Positions 1 to 34,318 of a DNA stretch of 34,318 nucleotides are shown here, piece after piece. This stretch comes from Trichoplax adhaerens (lineage: Eukaryota; Animalia; Placozoa), in assembly GCF_000150275.1 (NCBI RefSeq), contig NW_002060943.1, positions 12,494,794 through 12,529,111 on the forward strand, read 5' to 3'. The translations under genes were made by a program, and so were the position numbers. The notes below the pieces were generated by a model. The model worked only from the letters and a program-made list of their open reading frames with translations, had not been told where the DNA came from and did no database searches. Positions within the stretch are counted from its first letter, which is position 1. Each line of letters begins with the position of its first letter.

Positions 1-1155
1 CATTTTGTGCAACATTCTTAACTAAAACGAAACGTTTATTCTATTTTTGATAATTTTTGATAATTTTGATAAGGTTCAGCAGTAAATAGTTCTTGTCGAT
101 TCTACAGCCCAGATGCAATCTCGTTTCTACTGCAATAAAGTTACTAACTTCATTGAACTCTATATGATATTAATTTGTAATAGCATCACTGTGTGATAAA
201 GCGTCTAACTTTAAGCAAAGACTTCCGTATCTTGAGAATAAATTACATCTTCCACCAAGGACCAGATTAGCTACGACTAACTAACTTCAAAGACGAAATC
301 TCCTGCTTATATGTACATTTAGTTGCAAAGTATCATCAGGATACAGAGATCAACATCTATCTTAGTTAGCCTAGGATTTCGTTACTTGCGTATGTTAAGG
401 TGTTAAGGTTACCTAATACAGCATCTCTAATAACTACTGCAATCTATACTTTTTCTAGTCTTAGTTTTGTAATCGCGTAGAGTTTAGAATGTAAATTTCG
501 CGTAAAGGGACGTATCAGTCTCACAATTACCATTACGGATACTTGTATTTAAATAGTATAGTATTCAAGTATTTGGCAAAGTTGTTTGCTCAGAGCTCAT
601 AGTTGAGCGTGAACGATTAGTAAATTGAATTTCTCTTCAGAGATTATAAGTCCTGTATGGCCAGGTATTAACTTAGGATTTACGTACATTGCGTTATTCT
701 TAGCTCGAGGTTATGGGCAGTTTAGAGAATAGAGAAATAAAGCATTACTATGCTTAACCGAAGATCACCAAGTTGTTGTGAGTCAGTAGGTCGAATATAT
801 CAGCTATCCGAGAGTCGGAGTACCTCGTGAGTTAATCCCAGCTCCATCTCATCACGATATACCAAACTGTAACAATATTATAACTACTAGCACGAATACT
901 CATACCACCTTAGAATCACTGTTTAAGTTATATTGGGGCTGTACTACACACTACTACTACAATAGGTTTGTCATTGAACGATTTTCGCGATCTATTCGAT
1001 CTTATTAGACTAATAGACCGACTTAGAATTGAACAGGGTTGAAACGCCTATACTTTAAGAAATACTTGGTGGACATGTTGTTTACCGACTGCAATACTTC
1101 AGTATGGTGTCGTATTGTGCTGTTAGTGCTGTAATTATAATGAAAAGCAGAATAC

Positions 1156-3912
1156 CTAAAGCAAATATCTAATCAAACACCTTACAAAACGCTCAATGGT
1201 ACCTGCTAACTCATCTTCCTCTTCTTGCTTCTCGTGTTTCTCTTGCTTTTCTTGCTTTTCTTGCTTCTCTTGCTTCTCTTGCTCCTTTTGTTTCTCTTTC
1301 TCCTCTAGCTCCTCTTGATGCCTTTTTTCCCCTTGCTCTTCTTGCTTCTCTTGCTTTTCTCGCTTCTCTTGCTCCTCTAGCTCCTTTTGCTTCTCTTTTT
1401 CCTCTTGCTCCCTTTTTCCCCCTTGCTTCTTTAGCTTCTCCTCTTGCTCTTCTTGCTTCTCATGCTCCTCTTGTTTCTCCTCTTGCTTTTCTTGCTTCTC
1501 TTGTTCCTCTTGTTTCTCTTTGAGTGATTTCTTATTCGTAGAAATAGCTTCTTCACGCTTACCTTCAGCTTGATATACATTTCTTAGATTGTTATATGAC
1601 TTTGCGACATCAGGATGGTTGTGACCCAAAACTGATAATAGAATGTTATAGGATTGCTCGTACATAGAAATAGCTTCTTCATGCTTGCCTTCAGCAAGAT
1701 ATACATTTCCTAGACCGCTATACGACTTTGCCACATCAGGATGATTGCGACCCAAAACTGATAATTGAATCTTAAGGGATTGCTTATACATAGAAATAGC
1801 TTCTGTATGCTTGCTTTGATCGCTATAGACATGACCAATGTTGCAATATGTTATAGCAATACTTGGATGATTGTCGCCAAGTTGTGTCAGTTTAATCTTG
1901 AGTGACTTGTTATACATTGATAGAGCGTCATCATACTTGCCTTGATGATGATAGACATTTGCAATGTTGTGATATGTTGTAGCAATACTTGGATGATTGT
2001 CGCCAAGTTGTGTCAGATTAATCTTGAGCGATTTATTATACATTGATAGAGCGTCATCATACTTGCCTTGATGATTATAGACACTTGCAATGTTGTTATA
2101 TGTATCAGCAATACTTGGATGATTGTCGCCAAGTTGTGTCAGATCAATCTTGAGTGACTTGTTATACATTGATAGAGCGTCATCATACTTGCCTTGAATA
2201 TCATAGACACTTGCAATGTTGTGATATGTATCAGCAATACTCGGATGATTGTCGCCAAGTTGTGTTTGTCGAATCTTGAGTGACTTGTTATACATTGATA
2301 GAGCGTCGTCATACTTGCCTTGATGATCATAGACAAGACCAATATTGTTATATGTTGTAGTAATACTTGGATGATTGTCGCCAAGTTGTGTTAGATTAAT
2401 CTTGAGTGACTTGTTATACATTAATAGAGCGTCATCATACTTGCCTTGATTATCATAGACACTTGCAATGTTGTTATATGTATTAGCAATACTTGGATGA
2501 TTGTTGCCAAGTTGCGTCAGTTTCATTTTGAGAGACTTGTTAAACATTGATAGAGCGTCATCATACTTGCCTTGACGATTATAGACACGACCAATGTTGT
2601 GATATGTTGTAGCAATACTTGGATGATTGTCGCCAAGTTGTGTCAGTTTAATCTTGAGTGACTTGTTATACATTGATAAAGCGTCATCATACTTGCCTTG
2701 ATCATCATAGACAAGACCAATGTTGTGATATGTATCAGCAATACTTGGATGATTGTCGCCAAGTTGTGTCAGTTTAATCTTGAGTGACTTGTTATACATT
2801 GATAGAGCGTCATCATACTTGCCTTGATCTTTATAGACATTTCCAATGTTGTGATATGTATCAGCAATACTTGGATGATTGTCGCCAAGTTGTGTCAGAT
2901 CAATCTTGAGTGACTTGTTATACATTGATAAAGCGTCATCATACTTGCCTTGATGATAATAGACACTTGCAATGTTGTGATATGTATTAGCAATACTTGG
3001 ATGATTGTCGCCAAGTTGTATCAGTTTAATCTTGAGTGACTTGTTATACATTGATAGAGCGTCATCATACTTGCCTTGATTATCATAGACATTTGCAATG
3101 TTGTTATATGTATCAGCAATACTTGGATGATTGTCGCCAAGTTGTGTCAGATCAATCTTGAGTGACTTGTTATACATTGATAAAGCGTCATCATACTTGC
3201 CTTGATCATCATAGACACTTGCAATATTGTGATATGTATCAGCAATACTTGGATGATTGTCGCCAAGTTGTGTTAGATTAATCTTGAGTGATTTGTTATA
3301 CATTGATAGAGCGTCATCATACTTGCCTAGGTCTTGATAGGCTTGTCCAATGCTGTTATATAATACAGCCATACTTGGATCGTTATTTTCAAGAATTTTC
3401 AGTTTAATCCTTAATGATTTATTGTATTCCTTTAAAGCCTCGTCACGCTTGCCTTGATTCTGATAGACCAAGCCAATGTTCTGATAGGACTTACAGACAC
3501 TAAGATGTTCACTCCCTAACGATTTTAATTTTATTTGAAGTGATTTGTTGTAATCACTCAAAGCACCCATAAAATCACTTTGAAGTCGTTTACAGTCGCC
3601 CTGGATATCGAAACAATAAGAAATCTTGACCTCTTCTAGTTTCTTAGCTAACTTTTCTGCTTTTCCACTGTATTCATTGGCTTCTATCAATTGATATTTT
3701 TCCAGGTAAGATTGAGCCATAGCGAGATAAATAGAATATTTAAGTTGACGACGACTATCACTACTCTCCGCTATCGATTTGATTCGAGTTACAGCTTTCT
3801 GAAAATAAAATAATGCGTCTCCATAATTGCCTTCGCCATGATATTTCACGCCCTTTTTGCGTATAGATTCAATCTCGTCAAATATCGTAGAATTGCTAGT
3901 CTGATTGGCCAT
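1156..3912 (-). CDS. 42-residue TPR-repeat protein (kinesin-light-chain/NPHP3-like TPR type): N-terminal helical cap, ~15-17 TPRs, Q/E/K-rich C-terminal stalk
   Basis: Uninterrupted 918-aa ORF with the 42-aa unit IAxTYxNIxxVYxxQGKYDDALSMYNKSLKIxLTQLGDNHPS repeated in tandem. The true C-terminus may extend to ~1082 (see findings). Confidence 0.93.
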   Translation of the reverse strand: MANQTSNSTIFDEIESIRKKGVKYHGEGNYGDALFYFQKAVTRIKSIAESSDSRRQLKYSIYLAMAQSYLEKYQLIEANEYSGKAEKLAKKLEEVKISYCFDIQGDCKRLQSDFMGALSDYNKSLQIKLKSLGSEHLSVCKSYQNIGLVYQNQGKRDEALKEYNKSLRIKLKILENNDPSMAVLYNSIGQAYQDLGKYDDALSMYNKSLKINLTQLGDNHPSIADTYHNIASVYDDQGKYDDALSMYNKSLKIDLTQLGDNHPSIADTYNNIANVYDNQGKYDDALSMYNKSLKIKLIQLGDNHPSIANTYHNIASVYYHQGKYDDALSMYNKSLKIDLTQLGDNHPSIADTYHNIGNVYKDQGKYDDALSMYNKSLKIKLTQLGDNHPSIADTYHNIGLVYDDQGKYDDALSMYNKSLKIKLTQLGDNHPSIATTYHNIGRVYNRQGKYDDALSMFNKSLKMKLTQLGNNHPSIANTYNNIASVYDNQGKYDDALLMYNKSLKINLTQLGDNHPSITTTYNNIGLVYDHQGKYDDALSMYNKSLKIRQTQLGDNHPSIADTYHNIASVYDIQGKYDDALSMYNKSLKIDLTQLGDNHPSIADTYNNIASVYNHQGKYDDALSMYNKSLKINLTQLGDNHPSIATTYHNIANVYHHQGKYDDALSMYNKSLKIKLTQLGDNHPSIAITYCNIGHVYSDQSKHTEAISMYKQSLKIQLSVLGRNHPDVAKSYSGLGNVYLAEGKHEEAISMYEQSYNILLSVLGHNHPDVAKSYNNLRNVYQAEGKREEAISTNKKSLKEKQEEQEKQEKQEEKQEEHEKQEEQEEKLKKQGGKREQEEKEKQKELEEQEKREKQEKQEEQGEKRHQEELEEKEKQKEQEKQEKQEKQEKQEKHEKQEEEDELAGTIERFVRCLIRYLL
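1215..1520 (-). repeat. Low-complexity 9-nt-based coding repeat (CAAGAGAAG / CAAGAAAAG, encoding QEK/QEE), predicted coiled-coil or single-helix stalk
   Basis: The + strand is (ttcttgctt/ctcttgctc)n and the protein reads ...QEKQEKQEEKQEEHEKQEE... Confidence 0.9.
1860..3330 (-). repeat. Coding tandem array of 126-bp units (12 GKYDDAL blocks, ~11 complete near-identical units)
   Basis: The + strand motif gcgtcatcatacttgcc recurs every 126 nt, and synonymous sites are almost invariant. Confidence 0.97.
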
Positions 3913-5910
3913 ATTTTACTTTTCAACAACAATCAAAATATACGATTTGAGAAAAATAGTCACAATTTGTCTACTCGATAGGGTTAACAATTTTGATCGC
4001 TGTACAAATGAGTGATGAAATACGTAAAGAGCACACTATCATGGATGCTCGATGCTTTCAAATCAAGATCAGCATTACAAAGTCGTATTTCAGTTATTCT
4101 CTATCTGAAGTGGAAATAGTTGCCATTTCAGAGAATGACATAAATGTCTTTAGTAGCGAACAGATACTTTATTATAGTATGTAATTCGCGTAAGAGTGCG
4201 GTAGTTACTAGGAAGCAGCGTGCAAGCTGTGATGAAATAATATGAGAACCACTAACACTGTAACTATTATAGCTAACGCAAACTGAGGTAGAAATCGGTA
4301 GCATTTACAGCTTTGAAGATAGAAAATATACCATACTAGTCTATGAAAATAGAAGAGAATGCAATTTGCCTATTAAAGTACAAACACAAAATCTTAATTT
4401 AAATCGGTAGAATTATCCGCAAAATGCTGTATCGTAGGTTGATTTTTGATTATTTTCCATCCAAACAGTATTGACTTAATAGTTGTTTGCAATCGTACTT
4501 AAAGTCTTCGATTCATGTATAACATTTATTCCTTAATGTGGATTGAATATGAATAGTCTAACAGATTTTCATTACCTTCCAACTGAAGCTGAGGAAAACT
4601 TGAACAATAACTTGATTTAAGCTTAACTTATTGTAAAGGTAGCTGCGGATAATTATCGATATAACCGAACAGATAATAGTGATTGTTAAGTGTACTTTGT
4701 CCTAGTACAACAAATCGCATAATTACTACTTGCTTCTGTTAATACTGTATAATGTACAAGCTGCTAGAGACAATGTAGTAACCACATGGTGGTTAGCAAG
4801 ATCTTGTCAAATAAACAGACTATTTACAATGTATACGGTATGTCTTCTGTGCAATAAAACTGCTGTTAGGTGAGCACATACTATTATCGGATAAATATTC
4901 AATCTATTGCATCTTTCATAATATTGTCGCAATCAGTCAATCTTACTACATTTTATATTAGAAACCTTTTTTATTAAATATAATTCAGCTCTAGCATTAC
5001 TGTAATACGTGTTGTCAACGCTAAATTTATACATTAACAAGCAGTTTTAATCATACTGCCAATGGCAACAAAATCTTGCTGAAAAACGTGATACATCGAT
5101 GATCTAGTATTGATTAGCGAAGCAGCCATAACAAAATAAAGCATCCTATTCAACATTTGAAAGAAATCCTGTATTTAGTACGAAAGAAATCTATCTAATA
5201 CAGATACCAAAGTTTATCCCAGATTTATAATTATTGGATTATCATAGGAATATAGTTTCTTATTCATGTACGTATCTCTTGTAATTGTAGAAATGTTTGC
5301 ATAACACAAAGCAATTGATTACTATGCAACATTGACATTGTCTCAAAATAAGATGAAAAAAACGCAGTATTACTAGATAAAGCCACTTAATCTAGCAAAA
5401 GGCAATTTCGAATAGTTTATGTAAATATTGCATATCAACATTTCGTTGTTTCTATTTTACACTACGGATTATAAGGTAAAAGTGTATAACCGTAAGAGCC
5501 AAAATAACTTGAGCAATCGATGCTGCTTGTCACAGCGACATATCTTAAATGAAATTAAAAAATTTTAAAATAGAAGCAAGTGTTATAGTTCATCCTTCAA
5601 TATAGTAAAATGGCACCGTAAAAGCCATGACTGAAATAAACGATAAGAAAGTAGCTATAGCACACATCTTGTCAGTTTATTAACAGACCTGCTGTAGTAA
5701 AAAAATAAAATATTCTCATATTGTCAACAATATCGGTAGAACGAATATAGGATTACTGTCGGTAAATTACGTAGAGACATGTTAAATCTTGATTGCTAAC
5801 ACAAGATAACTATCAAATCACGTAATGTTGATCCTTTCAAATAGCTAATTGTTAGAAGCGGCTGATTCGTTGACTTTTGCTATCCTAAATTGATTTTTCA
5901 ACTATAAATA

Positions 5911-8006: not shown

Positions 8007-9110
8007 ATGCACGCTATAAAAAGGCTATTGGACATATTTAATCGGAAAAGCAAGAGTACCGAACAGGATACGTCTAATTTGATTGATGATTCAATCCTTG
8101 CTCAACAGGCTCAATTACTATATGAAGATGATCTGAAAAGTGGAGAGGAACGCCTTGCCCCGAATATTGAAGAAATGGTAGTTTTATCCCATATTTCTTT
8201 TGATTATGAGAAGTTATGTGATATTTATCTACGCGTTTCCTACATGCATATTCAACGCAAAGAATTCACTAAGGCTGATCAATGGTGTAGCAAAGCCTAT
8301 GAGTGGGCTAATACATATAACGTATTGAATAATCTTACGCTAACTCGTTGTATAAAGAGAAGAGGCGATATAAAAAGACTGGAAGGTGATTTAAGTCGTG
8401 CACTGGAAAATTATTCCCAATCATTAGAAGTCAAAAATAAGGCGTACGACATTGATAATGAAGAGACTATTAATTCAGCGCGAATTATTGGACATATTTA
8501 TTATCTTCAGGGCAAGTATGATAAGGCTCTTGCACAGTATTCTATGATAATTGAAAACAGATCATTGTGGCTTAAAAATGAACGTGATGAAATTATTACT
8601 AAAGATTTTGCCTCAGCGGGATTTGCATGTATTAAGCTCGGAAAGTTTAGTAGCGCGCTTGAAAATTTTCAACGCTCTCTCCATTTAAGCCTTATGATCG
8701 ATAGAGAAGACTTAGCTGCTGTATCCTATAATCACATTGCAAGTACTTATGATGATCAAGGCGAGTATAGTAAAGCTATTGACAGTTATAACGAATTACT
8801 GATCTCGTCCAAACTTGATGATAATCATCCAATTTTTGGTGAAACGTATAACAACATGGCAATTGTCCACTGCCATCAAGGAAACTTCGATCAGGCTTCT
8901 ACTTTAATTAGCAAAGCGCTTGAAATTTCTCTACCGAAATTGGATAAGCATCATCCCCATATCGCTTTGGTGAAAAAAAATTTAGCTCTCATTGTGTCTT
9001 ATCAACAATCACAGGATCATTCAGCAAATAAAAGCAGCGATATTGCTATTCATGATTTGGCAAAAATTTTGCAAAATAACCCTGAAAATTATCGAACTTC
9101 ATTGCAGTAG
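8007..9110 (+). CDS. Single-exon TPR protein (367 aa) with diverged 42-aa-type repeats
   Basis: Intact ORF with TPR motifs such as SYNHIASTYDDQGEYSKA and DNHPIFGETYNNMAIVHCHQG. It shares the C-x3-GDIKRL cap motif with the other TPR loci. Confidence 0.85.
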   Translation: MHAIKRLLDIFNRKSKSTEQDTSNLIDDSILAQQAQLLYEDDLKSGEERLAPNIEEMVVLSHISFDYEKLCDIYLRVSYMHIQRKEFTKADQWCSKAYEWANTYNVLNNLTLTRCIKRRGDIKRLEGDLSRALENYSQSLEVKNKAYDIDNEETINSARIIGHIYYLQGKYDKALAQYSMIIENRSLWLKNERDEIITKDFASAGFACIKLGKFSSALENFQRSLHLSLMIDREDLAAVSYNHIASTYDDQGEYSKAIDSYNELLISSKLDDNHPIFGETYNNMAIVHCHQGNFDQASTLISKALEISLPKLDKHHPHIALVKKNLALIVSYQQSQDHSANKSSDIAIHDLAKILQNNPENYRTSLQ

Positions 9111-15991: not shown

Positions 15992-17155
15992 GTGTATTTA
16001 AACTATACAGTATAGCATCGTACTTATGCTAGGAAGTGTACATACGTTGAAAGGTAATGTAGATATAAATTTTCTTTTTAATGTATCACTTTGTGCGGAT
16101 TATACTGCCGTTCATTTAAACGGGTAATTTACTAGTATTTATAACTCATTCATGTTCAGTGTTACTACGACAATGAGTGGGTATAAATGTAACTAGGAAT
16201 ATACTTTTCCCTACAATTTACTTTATTCTGCTATATAGCAGTATGTAGCTGTTTATACTTACATCTGCGTATTGTGTACCATAAGTCTTAAAATTAATGA
16301 AGCGCTAGTAATCCATCGATGTCGCTTTTAGATAAGTATTCGTCAGTGAGATTGATGCCATTCTATCCATTAAAAAACTGTGCCATGAAATTAGCGTCGT
16401 TGCTATACTCTTGGAAAAGACGATAATCCTCTGACAATTATACCTATGATAAACGAATTCTGCAAGACAACTGCTATGAGATCTAGGGATCACTGATCCA
16501 ATTGATGGCGAAGTTCTGTAGAATTCATGAACTAATTTCATCAAGAAATTTTAAGTCAACTTTGAGTACGTGTATTTATACTATACTGTATAGTATTGCA
16601 CTTATGTTAGGAAGCGTATATATTAAGATAATCTAGATATGAATTTTCTTTTTATGTGTCGCTTTGTGCAGATTATGTTCCCGTTCATTTAAACGGGTAA
16701 TTTACTAGTATCTACAACTGATCCATTTCAATGTTTCTATAACAGCAGATGGGTATAAATATGTATAAATGTATACTGAGAATATGCTTTTCCCTGCACT
16801 TTATTTATTTCATTCTGCTATATGGCAGTAAGTAGCTGTTTGTACTTGTATTTGATGTATGAAATACTTAATCCTGAATTATGTCCCATAAGTCTTCAAT
16901 TAATGGATTGCTAGTAATCCATAGATATCGCTTTTAGATAAATATTAGTTGGTGGGATTGAAGCAATCCTACCCATCAAAACTGAGCCATGAAACTAGTG
17001 TTATTACTATACCCTTGGAAAAGATCATAATCCTCAGACAATTATACCTATAATAAACGAGTTCTCCAAGACTACTGGAAATGAGATCTTGGTATTATTG
17101 ATCCATTTGATGTTGATGTTCCGTAGAGTTAATGAGCTAATTTCATCAAGTAGTT
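15992..17155. repeat. Tandem duplication of a ~570-600-bp non-coding segment (copy A ~15992-16550, copy B ~16571-17155)
   Basis: Shared blocks include cttatg.taggaag, ccgttcatttaaacgggtaatttactagtat, cataagtctt, gctagtaatccat, gccatgaaa and cttggaaaaga. Confidence 0.92.
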
Positions 17156-18260
17156 CCACACTAATCACTTATTTTATAAATGCTCATGATGAACGAATTC
17201 TCCAAGACAACAGGAAATGACATCTTAATGTCATTGATCCATTTGATGGTGATATTTTGTAGAATGAATCAATTAATTTCAAGAAGAAATTCCTTACCAA
17301 TTACTTATTCTACAAACGCTTATGATAAATGAATCCTTCAAGACAACCGGAAATGACATCTTGAGATCATTAATCCATTTGATAGTAATATTCCATAGAA
17401 TGAATGAACTAACTCCATGAAGAAATCTCGTACTAATTACTTATTCTACATACGCTTATGATAAAACGAATCCTTCTAGACAACTGGGAATGACATTTTC
17501 ATATCATTGATCTAATTCGTGGTGCTGCTTTAGAGAATTAATGCAGTAATTTTAGGAAGAAATTCCATACCAATTACTTATTCTACAAATGCCTATGATA
17601 AACGAATCCTTCAAGACAACTGAGAAAGATATTTTAATATCATTAATCCAATTCGTGGTGCTGTTCTAGAGAATTAATGAAGTAATTTCATGAAGAAATT
17701 CCGTGCTGATTACTTGTTCTACAAACGCTTATGATAAACGAATCCTTCAAGACAACTGAGAATGACATTTTAATATCATTAATCCAGTTCTTGGTGCTGT
17801 TCTAGAGAATTGATGAAGTAATTTCATGAAGAAATTCCGTATTAATTACTTGTTGTACAAACGCTTATGATAAACGAATGCTTCTAGACAACTGAGAATG
17901 ACATTTTAATATCATTAATCCAGTTCTTGGTGCTGTTCTAGAGAATTCAGTGAAGTGATTTCATAAAGAAATTCCGTACTAATTACTTGTTCTACAAACG
18001 CTTATGATAAACGAATGCTACTAGACAACTGAGAATGACATTTTAATATCATTAATCCAGTTCTTGGTGCTGTTCTAGAGAATTAATGAAGTAATCTCAT
18101 AAAGAAATTCCGTACTGATTACTTGTTCTACAAACGCTTATGATAAACGAATGCTTCTAGACAACTGAGAATGACATTTTAATATCATTAATCCAGTTCT
18201 TGGTGCTGTTCTAGAGAATTCAGTGAAGTAATTTTAGGAAGAAATTTCATACTAATTATT
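17045..18260. repeat. Tandem array of ~9 units of 136-137 bp (minisatellite), non-coding
   Basis: An atgataaacgaat-type start occurs at 17050, 17186, 17322, 17458, 17595, 17731, 17867, 18004 and 18140. The unit length is mostly not a multiple of 3. Confidence 0.96.
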
Positions 18261-32279: not shown

Positions 32280-34318
32280 ATGGCTACTAGATATAGCGAA
32301 TTAAAAATTTTTCAGAAAATTCAACTCCTATATGAAGAAGGCGAGAAGAAGTATATAGCGCAGGATGACCTAAATGCAATCTCAAATTACGAGCAAGCTC
32401 TAGATCAAATTCAGTCGTTGCCAAAAAAGGATACTGATCTAGAACTCCAGTATAAGATTAATCTTCGGATTACTGATATTTATATTCGGCATGGCGAATG
32501 GAGTCAAGCTACTAAATTTAGGCAACATGCTCTATATATGGCTAATAGAATGAAAAATCAGGTCTACATTGCCGATTGCATAGACAGGCAAGGAGACATT
32601 AAAAGAATGACTGGCGACGAAAGTGGAGCCTTATCTGATTTTCGGATATCACTGGATATGAAGTTAAAATCACTTGATGGCGACAATTTAAGCATTGGTG
32701 ATACCTATCATAAAATAGGACGTGCCTACTTTAGTCAAAAAGAATATAATAGGGCACTTTTAATGTATCAAAAAGCACTTGATATTCGAATCAGAAAGCT
32801 TGGTGATGATGATCTAATTGTAGCTCAATCCTATCATAATATAGGACTTGCCTATAGCAACCTAGGCATGCTTGAGATGCTATCAATATGAATAAAAAAT
32901 CACTTGAAATAAATCTTGCCAAGCTCGATAATGATCATTATCACGTTACTACTTCTTACGATTTCATGGGAAATTTATATAAGAAGAAAGGGGCGTATAA
33001 AGAAGCTCTTGCAGTGTTTAGAAAAAGTCTTGAAATTAGATTGCAACGGCTTGGTAGTAATGATGTTAGTGTTGCATCATCGTATCGAAATATAGGGCTT
33101 CTGCATCGTAGCGCTAAGCAAAATAATCAGGCTATACGGATGCTTGAAAAAGCAATCGAAATTTTAACTTTTAATTATGGAGAAAATCACCGAAACATTG
33201 CCAATATCTATAATGAAGTAGCTACATGCTATAGTCATTTGCATCAGAAAGATGTAGCCGCGAATATAAGACGAAAGGCTGATAGCATTCGTAAAATTTT
33301 AAGTCATTCGCCACAGAAGAACAGTCACCGAGTATTTCAACCACTTAGCCATGTTTCCCGACAATCAGAAGGTAAATTTCTATGCATGCGATTAGTACAA
33401 CTATATTTATAATTAATTTCTGCTTAGTACTGTATATGTCATCCACTTTTTTTCTTTCTATTGCAAAATATGCACTTAATTTCTAAAACAGAAGATGATT
33501 TTAGCTGCTGTTTCATCTTAAATAGTCGTGTCGTACTAAAGGCAACGGAAATCTTGACCATTAGTTCTTAATTAGTTATGATAATGTGCACGTATGCTAA
33601 CAGGTAGTTTATATCTAATTCATTAAAATAAGCAGTCTCTCTTGTACTATTCTTGACATCGTTTAAATCACATTTATTTCGTTTGAATCACTCTGAATGT
33701 AGGTCATGAAAATGGCCAATCAGTCTTTCAGCAAATTGAGACTAGAAGGGATAGAAAGAGTAGCGATCATGGTAAATATAAGAAACCTTAGTCATTCCCT
33801 GGATATCACTGCACATTCGTAACCTTTGCTCCACTAATAAATTTTTATTTTTCTATCTGTTGTATATCATATTTGAATGATATTTGGATAGGTACTGGTA
33901 TACAAAGCAAAAATTACTTAAAAGCGTATAATAGAGCAATAAAGCAAGGAAAGCGTCGCAATAATTTGATTCGTGCTATGTTTGTTGGGCCTCGTAATGT
34001 CGGTAAATCATCGATTATGAGAGTTTTCACTCAACAAAGGCTAAGCGGTCATGACTCACCGACACAAGTTGCTGAATGGTCGGAAAGAATGATCAAAATC
34101 AATGCTTATGACATTTATGATGGGAAATTTTGTGCTATGAGTGAAATATTAGAAAAAAATGTGATCGCGTCTATAGAAGAATCGCCTCAAGTTACCAAAG
34201 AGCTTGATGACAATCCAAACTTCAAGAAGCAGATTATCGAAACTCCCATATTAAGTAAAGATAATGCGCAAGCTGCAACAAACAAATCATCATTAAATAA
34301 TCTATGCCTCGACTCTTC
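32280..34318 (+). CDS. TPR-Roco-type protein (N-terminal TPRs followed by a Roc GTPase), 3'-incomplete; carries a 1-nt frameshift near 32876 (pseudogene or sequence error)
   Basis: ORFs 32280-32891 and 32888-33412 join as LGMLE(D)AINMNKKSLEI if one base is restored. Phase-1 splices 33371|33703 and 33771|33892 lead to YLKAYNRAIKQGKRRNNLIRAMFVGPRNVGKSSIMRVF, with Walker A at 33987-34010. The frame is open to the window end. Confidence 0.78.

Follow-up and report, generated by a model that had tools for sequence, protein, structure and literature searches.

What is to be made of a gene whose repeats are nearly the same from one end of an array to the other, and differ among themselves at the same few codons? 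The question is raised by an open reading frame (ORF) of Trichoplax adhaerens (Placozoa), located in a stretch of 34,318 nucleotides (NCBI RefSeq assembly GCF_000150275.1, contig NW_002060943.1, positions 12,494,794 to 12,529,111 of the forward strand) which is referred to here as the window. In the contig numbering used below the window is C1414:12,494,794-12,529,111, and the assembly searched comprises 105.6 Mb in 1414 contigs. The ORF, found in the ORF list and examined with Pfam, occupies 1156-3912 of the minus strand and runs uninterrupted for 918 codons plus a stop. It encodes an all-TPR (tetratricopeptide repeat) protein with a charged tail, and its centre is an array of 11 near-identical units. 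The best explanation, and in our judgement a likely one, is that the protein forms a long TPR superhelix in which the 11 central repeats provide a modular, fast-changing binding surface. That this surface is diversified and can be reprogrammed is well supported; that it belongs to a receptor with an immune or allorecognition function is a tentative suggestion, the case for which consists of analogy and of kinship with Roco/Death paralogues.

Near-identical repeats with hypervariable positions

Tandem Repeats Finder reported a 126-bp period over 1836-3328 (11.8 copies, 90% matches, no indels), and the array stays in frame with the 918-residue ORF without a single frame break. A Pfam search of the ORF at E ≤ 0.01 returned TPR_12 (E = 8e-216, 699 bits), TPR_10 (E = 4e-136, 440 bits) and the Nephrocystin-3 TPR model, TPR_NPHP3 (E = 3e-109); the curated cut-offs for TPR_12 and TPR_10 are about 30 bits. 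With profile matches above cut-off and helix-turn-helix units of 42 residues, the repeats are KLC-type TPRs (TPR_10/TPR_12), and KLC1 and KLC2 chains match them at E = 1e-39 to 1e-44. The units were cut as 42 residues in the register of a preliminary description of the locus. Units 0-10, the central array delimited by Tandem Repeats Finder and the unit table, cover 1861-3246 on the minus strand (residues 223-684), and half-units of the central type flank them on each side (3247-3372 and 1735-1860). With 11 units and 462 residues, the array falls within the high-internal-identity (HiC) class as set out for fungal NLRs, in which repeats must share 85% identity or more across a minimum of 100 residues.

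Variation among the 11 full units is concentrated in seven codons, at unit positions 3 (six Asp, three Thr, two Asn), 6 (seven His, four Asn), 9 (seven Ala, four Gly), 10 (five Ser, three Asn, two Leu, one Arg), 13 (six Asp, two Asn and one each of Tyr, Lys and His), 14 (four His, three Asp, two Asn, one Arg, one Ile) and 32 (five Lys, three Asp, two Asn, one Arg). The six that remain when position 9 is omitted are termed the hypervariable codons below, and the signature which they form is distinct in 11 of 11 units. At position 7, Asn is found in all 11. The units have a mean pairwise nucleotide identity of 91.3%; the value rises to 96.4% when the seven codons are excluded and drops to 65.9% within them. 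These codons make up 17% of the unit and account for 6.4 of the 7.7 mean pairwise nonsynonymous differences, far above an even spread; at the silent sites of the framework the proportion of differences (pS) is 0.115. The preliminary description had listed the residues occurring at these positions and had stated that each unit carries a different combination. All the listed residues are present, the additional Ile, Cys, His and Ser coming from the half-diverged unit 11, and the combinations are indeed all different. Its statement that the units are almost identical holds outside the seven codons but does not extend, as had been claimed, to silent sites.

Nei-Gojobori comparison of the near-identical units of this gene gave a nonsynonymous rate (dN) of 0.59 at the hypervariable codons against a synonymous rate (dS) of 0.14 in the framework, where omega (dN/dS) is 0.23. 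A pooled set was then assembled from 12 genes with a framework at least 90% identical to that of this gene (141 units, 131 of them distinct), and changes were counted by codon parsimony on a tree of the 131 distinct units. The six codons have undergone 220.5 nonsynonymous and 14.5 synonymous changes; omega is 2.8 when the silent changes at these codons serve as the reference and 2.4 when the framework does. The other 36 codons have undergone 159 and 141 (omega 0.31). The nonsynonymous excess at the six codons has a binomial P of 1e-5 against neutrality. In total, the nonsynonymous rate at the six codons is 2.4-4 times the synonymous rate, with a framework omega of 0.2-0.3, and in each of the 13 genes having at least six near-identical units, dN at the hypervariable codons is higher than dS in the framework (ratios 1.2 to 15). 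These results support diversifying selection on the six codons taken together and purifying selection on the framework.

It could be argued, though we think it improbable, that diversifying selection is not involved at all: the array would stem from a recent burst of tandem duplication, and its groove sites, the least constrained in every TPR protein, would be drifting neutrally. The same positions do vary most across all TPRs whatever their function (PMC1261162), and the single-codon tests are weak for four of the six codons. Nevertheless, neutral drift predicts a dN close to dS, and the excess described above was found by pairwise and tree counts alike and in 13 of 13 genes. Many codon states are, moreover, two or three bases apart (GAT/ACA at position 3; AAA/GAT/CGA at position 32), with third positions and neighbouring codons unchanged. 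Nor is the framework dS of 0.12-0.14 artificially low: two paralogues diverge by 3-5% in their non-coding flanks and show a pS of 0.03-0.06 in their caps.

Placement of the variable sites in the TPR fold

HMMER alignment of the repeats to the consensus-TPR crystal chains 9qhb and 8bu0 placed unit positions 3, 6, 10, 13 and 14 at canonical TPR positions 2, 5, 9, 12 and 13. According to Magliery and Regan (2005, PMC1261162), the most variable TPR positions are 2, 5, 9, 12, 13, 33 and 34, all on the concave face, and positions 2, 5, 6, 9, 12 and 13 touch peptides in HOP co-crystals. The invariant Asn at unit position 7 aligns to N6 of the consensus, the Ala/Gly at position 9 to the small packing residue at canonical position 8, and position 32 to canonical position 31, just before an eight-residue insertion (the unit has 42 residues instead of 34). 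The alignment thus supports the view that the variable helix-A positions are those which would line the ligand groove. With the surface assigned by alignment in this way, the array also shows the positive selection at a few interaction-surface positions that characterizes HiC repeats.

An AlphaFold2 model of residues 97-810, obtained from the single sequence, consists of a regular stack of helices A and B with a mean pLDDT of 85, the central array lying mostly at 85-95. Helix A extends from position 41 of the preceding unit to position 14 and helix B from 18 to 36; positions 3, 6, 10, 13 and 14 therefore form one helix-A stripe, and position 32 is located on the extended helix B. The initial proposal that the variable sites share one face of helix A is retained for these five positions, the canonical groove set, and has to be abandoned for position 32, on helix B, and for the packing residue at position 9.

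The best Foldseek matches of the model include the TPR domains of OGT, consensus TPR superhelices and the KLC1 TPR domain (TM 0.89 by target, root-mean-square deviation 1.9 Å). The Asn ladder of OGT is located at canonical TPR position 6. The array shares with the OGT and KLC superhelices the fold and the one conserved Asn per repeat that aligns to this position and, presumably, neighbouring side chains that select the ligand. In contrast to the present units, the repeats of OGT and KLC are ancient, have diverged from one another, are conserved across species and do not form a near-identical family of rapid turnover. In the lumen of the OGT superhelix, the ladder grips peptide backbones and neighbouring side chains give selectivity (PMC11145291). 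On the reading preferred here, each repeat of the present array retains its hydrophobic core, its turn residues and the invariant Asn at the backbone-anchoring ladder position of other TPR superhelices, and five groove-facing residues of helix A and one of helix B diversify under selection. A likely ligand would be an extended peptide or a disordered protein segment, itself variable.

Turnover of the array among paralogues

When the assembly was searched in six frames with the array, 449 first-look candidates yielded at least 121 stretches that match, distributed over about 44 separate open frames. When 22 paralogous ORFs were cut into units, positions 3, 10, 13 and 14 were always among the most variable and 6 and 32 usually so; the genome-wide recurrence of the same variable positions, suggested as a check at the outset, is thus evident. 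The 141 pooled units of 12 genes carry 114 distinct six-residue signatures, with 8-11 amino acids at each hypervariable position (mostly Asn, Asp, His, Lys, Thr, Ser and Gln), and the framework positions are 90-100% invariant.

Six copies are close to one another: this gene, one on C1383, two on C1333 and two on C1414 (12.56 and 12.755 Mb). Common to them are the cap, the exit units, the charged tail and the last 17 residues. On the minus strand of the window, the N-terminal cap (3625-3912, residues 1-96) resembles the N-termini of Roco proteins (49-51% identity) and of close paralogues; to the latter it is 93% identical in amino acids, with a pS of 0.06 and a nonsynonymous proportion (pN) of 0.03. 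Three diverged entry TPR units follow (3247-3624, residues 97-222 in the unit table), whose signatures are conserved in the close paralogues and which match one-to-one at 122-124 of 126 nucleotides. The 2.5 diverged exit units beyond the central array (1543-1860, residues 685-790 in the unit table) are conserved in the paralogues as well and match at 122-126. The central arrays of the close copies comprise 3-13 units with unrelated signatures, and their flanks differ by only 3-5%. The arrays thus change in length and content from one near-identical paralogue to the next, in line with the earlier suggestion of a rapidly re-programmable surface.

Between the central units of this gene and units of other genes the similarity is as high as among neighbours within the gene, one unit being identical to a C1383 unit at 125 of 126 nucleotides, which suggests a shared pool of units and not homogenization within the gene. 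The 'concerted evolution' of the preliminary description is therefore apt in part, and its strict intragenic form was not supported, units being no closer within a gene than between genes. The C1383 copy has alternating two-unit patterns and runs of near-duplicates, which by their sequence point to recent duplication of units followed by point changes at groove codons. New arrays would accordingly be expected to arise in the germline: units would be duplicated, lost and reshuffled by unequal recombination in a genome-wide pool common to at least 12 genes, and point substitutions would later be fixed at groove positions.

The tail of the protein (1210-1542, minus strand, residues 791-901) is a Glu/Lys/Gln-rich low-complexity region with 39% Glu, 25% Lys and 20% Gln, built from a 9-bp repeat (Tandem Repeats Finder, 1223-1520, period 9). 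Its length is variable: at 1350/1377-1438, contigs from two DNA runs lack 60 or 87 bases and have six other letters at the joint. The last 17 codons, LAGTIERFVRCLIRYLL (1159-1209, minus strand), contain the hexamer GTAAGG at 1185-1180, and they are either a short amphipathic end or a read-through past a GTAAGG splice donor. Their product includes three Arg and one Glu and is conserved in all six close copies. A tail-anchored membrane protein was considered and rejected, since about 20 uncharged hydrophobic residues would be needed and the three Arg and one Glu within 17 residues, which may themselves be intron read-through, show that the C-terminus does not span a membrane.

The gene lies in a segmental duplication (641-4096) common with the paralogue at C1414:12.755 Mb, as found by blastn of both loci, with flanks 95-97% identical. 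From 4084-4096 onwards, the contigs of all four runs no longer follow the window and continue as the sequence found upstream of five paralogues; this places the 5' boundary of the duplication at 4084-4096. A misassembly at 4084 was accordingly rejected, the loose ends being the duplication boundary at which contigs follow paralogue sequence.

Is the printed order of units real? Parts of the stretch are contained in 20 public runs, always as short Logan contigs, of about 100 nucleotides or less inside the array, which fit several places and hence neither confirm nor refute a mosaic. It is very unlikely, in our estimate, that reads of paralogues 94-97% identical were merged during assembly into an order and combination of units that is not a real allele. 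In favour of such merging one can cite the existence of six or more near-identical paralogues, many of which lie beside gaps or on small contigs without placement, one paralogue in which a perfect six-unit block is present 2-3 times, and contigs too short to confirm the unit order. The pattern is, however, independent of this locus, being present in over 20 ORFs, among them genes located within multi-megabase scaffolds; the reading frame of the gene is unbroken throughout; and independent DNA runs from two organisms, compared over 1100-4100, give the unique flanks at ~99% identity. Contigs of an RNA-seq library cover 1273-1855 and 3377-4013, that is, both unique ends of the ORF, consistent with transcription of the ORF or its orthologue. 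The six-unit block, located in an 838-residue ORF at C1333:9000-18000, is identical in nucleotide sequence between its copies; it reflects either higher-order duplication that took place very recently or an artefact of assembly on a small gap-rich contig.

Hardly credible, to our mind, is a somatic or mutator origin of the diversity, by VLR-like assembly of cassettes or DGR-like targeted mutagenesis. It was brought up by analogy in the preliminary description, and the genome-wide unit pool could in principle serve as a source of donor cassettes. Against it, complete in-frame arrays of differing composition are found at many loci of the germline assembly, the present gene being itself complete as assembled; the codon changes are free of an adenine-specific or one-sided mutation pattern; and neither a reverse transcriptase nor a deaminase was found among the scanned ORFs of the window. 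Lamprey VLRs and TALEs resemble the array in having a repeat scaffold with variation limited to a few ligand-facing residues per repeat. Unlike the array, VLRs are leucine-rich repeats assembled somatically from cassettes and TALEs read one DNA base per repeat. Both parallels drawn earlier are loose: fold, mechanism and a code of one letter per repeat are unsupported, nothing indicates somatic assembly or a nucleic-acid code, and neither a TALE-like code nor somatic assembly gained support from any feature.

Several points count against a diversified binding surface. When each codon is tested against its own synonymous count, P falls below 0.01 for codons 10 and 32 only; the other four depend on pooling or on framework dS. 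The parsimony count presupposes a single tree, which is at odds with recombination among the units, and paralogues share units, so the genes are not independent samples. The groove assignment is drawn from alignment and published maps, which leave position 32 on helix B unplaced. The unit order derives from a Sanger-era assembly with gaps flanking the locus. No NACHT, NB-ARC, Roc, COR, death-fold or other signalling/effector or enzymatic domain was found in the ORF with Pfam at E ≤ 0.01, and there is no ligand on record for any member of the family.

The exact 918-residue protein was not found in the public protein collection, and when an orthologue from the sister lineage (H2) was sought with the whole protein, the N-terminal cap, and the exit units plus tail as queries, no protein more than 55% identical was found there. 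In the H2 genome paper, TPR genes stayed unmatched singletons between two Trichoplax genomes (PMC6057997). A distant paralogue, a minus-strand ORF of 1331 residues at C1413:6,715,000-6,724,500, has 30 units of 83% mean identity and ends in Cys-Cys-Ser-Ile-Ile, which looks like a CaaX prenylation box; such a box would give an array of this kind another route to the membrane.

Roco kinship, parallels and surroundings

Over its first 190 residues, the protein shares 49-51% identity with the N-termini of two Trichoplax sp. H2 proteins annotated as 'Nephrocystin-3' (RDD40155 and RDD39303), in which the TPRs are followed by Death, Roc, COR-A and a C-terminal death-like domain; RDD40336 is similar. 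In Trichoplax, multiple Roco genes that encode TPR, CARD and death domains had been catalogued by Civiero et al. (2014, PMC4104024), and about 45 COR loci were counted in the genome. Paralogues on C1389, directly upstream of Roc-COR ORFs, have the same variable positions in older repeats, which are 61-63% identical against ~90% nucleotide identity of the central repeats here. The gene thus resembles the Trichoplax Roco proteins (RDD40155, RDD39303, RDD40336) in its homologous cap, its repeat type and its genomic neighbourhood. It differs from them in ending in a Glu/Lys/Gln tail, without Death, Roc or COR; the charged tail stands where the Roco proteins have a linker. A Roco protein is defined by Roc followed by COR in one chain, and neither is found in this ORF.

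Could the ORF be just one exon of a larger gene? It might represent the 5' sensor exon of a TPR-Death-Roc-COR-Death gene whose other exons lie in the downstream gaps, the last ten codons and the stop being intron read-through. We regard this as rather unlikely. The window (1-16) starts exactly where a run of N spanning 2.1 kb ends, beyond which there is another gap, of 3.6 kb (C1414:12,487,534-12,494,793), and GTAAGG occurs ten codons before the stop. The cap is homologous to that of Roco proteins, and 3 kb downstream of the 12.755-Mb paralogue, on its strand, are Death/Roc-COR/Death-like ORFs 90-96% identical to RDD40155. Small gaps intervene, however, between that paralogue and those ORFs, and the duplication which it shares with the present gene stops 515 bp after the stop codon, the DNA beyond being different. 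In the H2 Roco proteins, TPRs and Death are joined by a different, non-charged linker that is present in other paralogues and not here, and the other copies of the subfamily are not accompanied by a neighbouring Roc-COR. In the assembled minus-strand DNA downstream, where gaps begin after 1.15 kb, no COR match was found. If the larger gene were real, the reading of the array as a binding surface would be unchanged and the protein would be a complete sensor-switch-effector receptor.

Assembly gaps cluster beside several copies of the TPR-array family, as would be expected if unassembled repeat arrays lie inside them. The window holds two more TPR genes on the plus strand, namely a 367-residue TPR_12 protein with diverged repeats (8007-9110) and the TPR start of a neighbouring TPR-Roc gene (32280-33412), for which the nearest COR match is 8.6 kb past the window end. 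Further copies in this family cluster are located at 12.56, 12.755, 12.87 and 13.23 Mb of the 13.26-Mb contig.

Returning to the array as a diversified binding surface, other members of the family bear the same cap and repeats before Death, a Roc-COR GTPase and a further Death domain, which makes it most likely that in this placozoan TPR-Death-Roc-COR-Death family the array serves as the ligand-sensing arm. In the present copy as assembled, a charged helical tail would replace the signalling modules and the protein would act as a stand-alone binder, an adaptor or a decoy.

The closest published parallel is found in fungi. The HiC TPR repeats of fungal NLRs, exemplified by Podospora anserina Pa_2_10340, have a 42-residue TPR_10/KLC-like unit, more than 85% identity and polymorphic repeat number (Dyrka et al. 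2014, PMC4986451). Their positively selected positions lie on the concave side of a KLC2-based model, and HiC repeats occur in only 0.8% of metazoan repeat proteins (PMC4986451). The resemblance to fungal NLR sensors that had been noticed at first sight is confirmed by the 42-residue unit, the internal identity above 85% and the few selected concave positions, placed here by alignment. In fungi, repeat number varies among alleles or paralogues; here paralogues were compared, with 3-13 central units between flanks 95-97% identical. The fungal arrays are C-terminal to NACHT or NB-ARC and combined with HET, PNP or sesB effectors, whereas the present one is N-terminal, has no nucleotide-binding domain, has relatives that use Roc-COR and Death, and belongs to an animal. 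An NLR/STAND architecture was ruled out for the ORF as assembled, because it contains no match to NACHT, NB-ARC or a signalling domain at E ≤ 0.01.

In the brown alga Ectocarpus, NB-ARC-TPR and LRR-ROCO genes undergo birth-and-death, repeat shuffling and diversifying selection at concave residues (Zambounis et al. 2012, PMC3341825; PMC11378527). In these candidates the repeats are joined to STAND or Roco switches, as those here are joined, in relatives, to a Roco switch. Brown algae have one exon per repeat, with exon shuffling and alternative splicing, while the whole array here is one exon.

Near-identical repeats with selected hypervariable contacts are a hallmark of receptors that track changing ligands, and such arrays have been documented so far mainly in fungal NLRs and brown-algal receptors. 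Placozoan immunity has been discussed in terms of NACHT/NB-ARC proteins with TPR or WD40 repeats (PMC6321704), and the literature retrieved on placozoan immunity and Roco genes makes no mention of repeat hypervariability or Roco-linked arrays. A large placozoan family tied to Roco-GTPase/Death, and not to NACHT/NB-ARC, points to an independent route to diversified intracellular recognition near the base of animals. We venture that the genome holds a germline repertoire of dozens of TPR 'paratope' arrays, which would be constantly rebuilt out of a shared pool through unequal recombination, be selected for novel residues in the groove and feed Roco-GTPase/Death signalling, with stand-alone copies like the present one as decoys or adaptors; the system might serve self/non-self discrimination or the control of intracellular bacteria; this is a possibility, held at low confidence. 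If true, it would be an animal counterpart of the fungal allorecognition NLRs on a different molecular switch. The arrays are concrete candidates for the basis of non-self or symbiont recognition in placozoans and, in practical terms, natural libraries on a consensus-like TPR scaffold. New here is the animal, Roco-related, N-terminal version of a known evolutionary device, to which are added an intact gene copy, the layout of conserved ends and variable centre, quantified selection, the Roco/Death link and a subfamily with a charged tail.

The remaining features of the window are of a different nature. Two minus-strand ORFs are ordinary neighbouring genes: an exon-sized one at 6435-6821 matches JNK1/MAPK8-associated membrane protein (JAMP) at E = 3e-12, and one of 289 residues at 12100-12969 matches Mlf1IP weakly, below the curated cut-off. 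At 17049-18258 lies a tandem repeat in non-coding DNA; its basic period is 136 bp, with higher-order periods of 273 and 409 bp (8.9 copies, ~86% matches), and it looks like a satellite.

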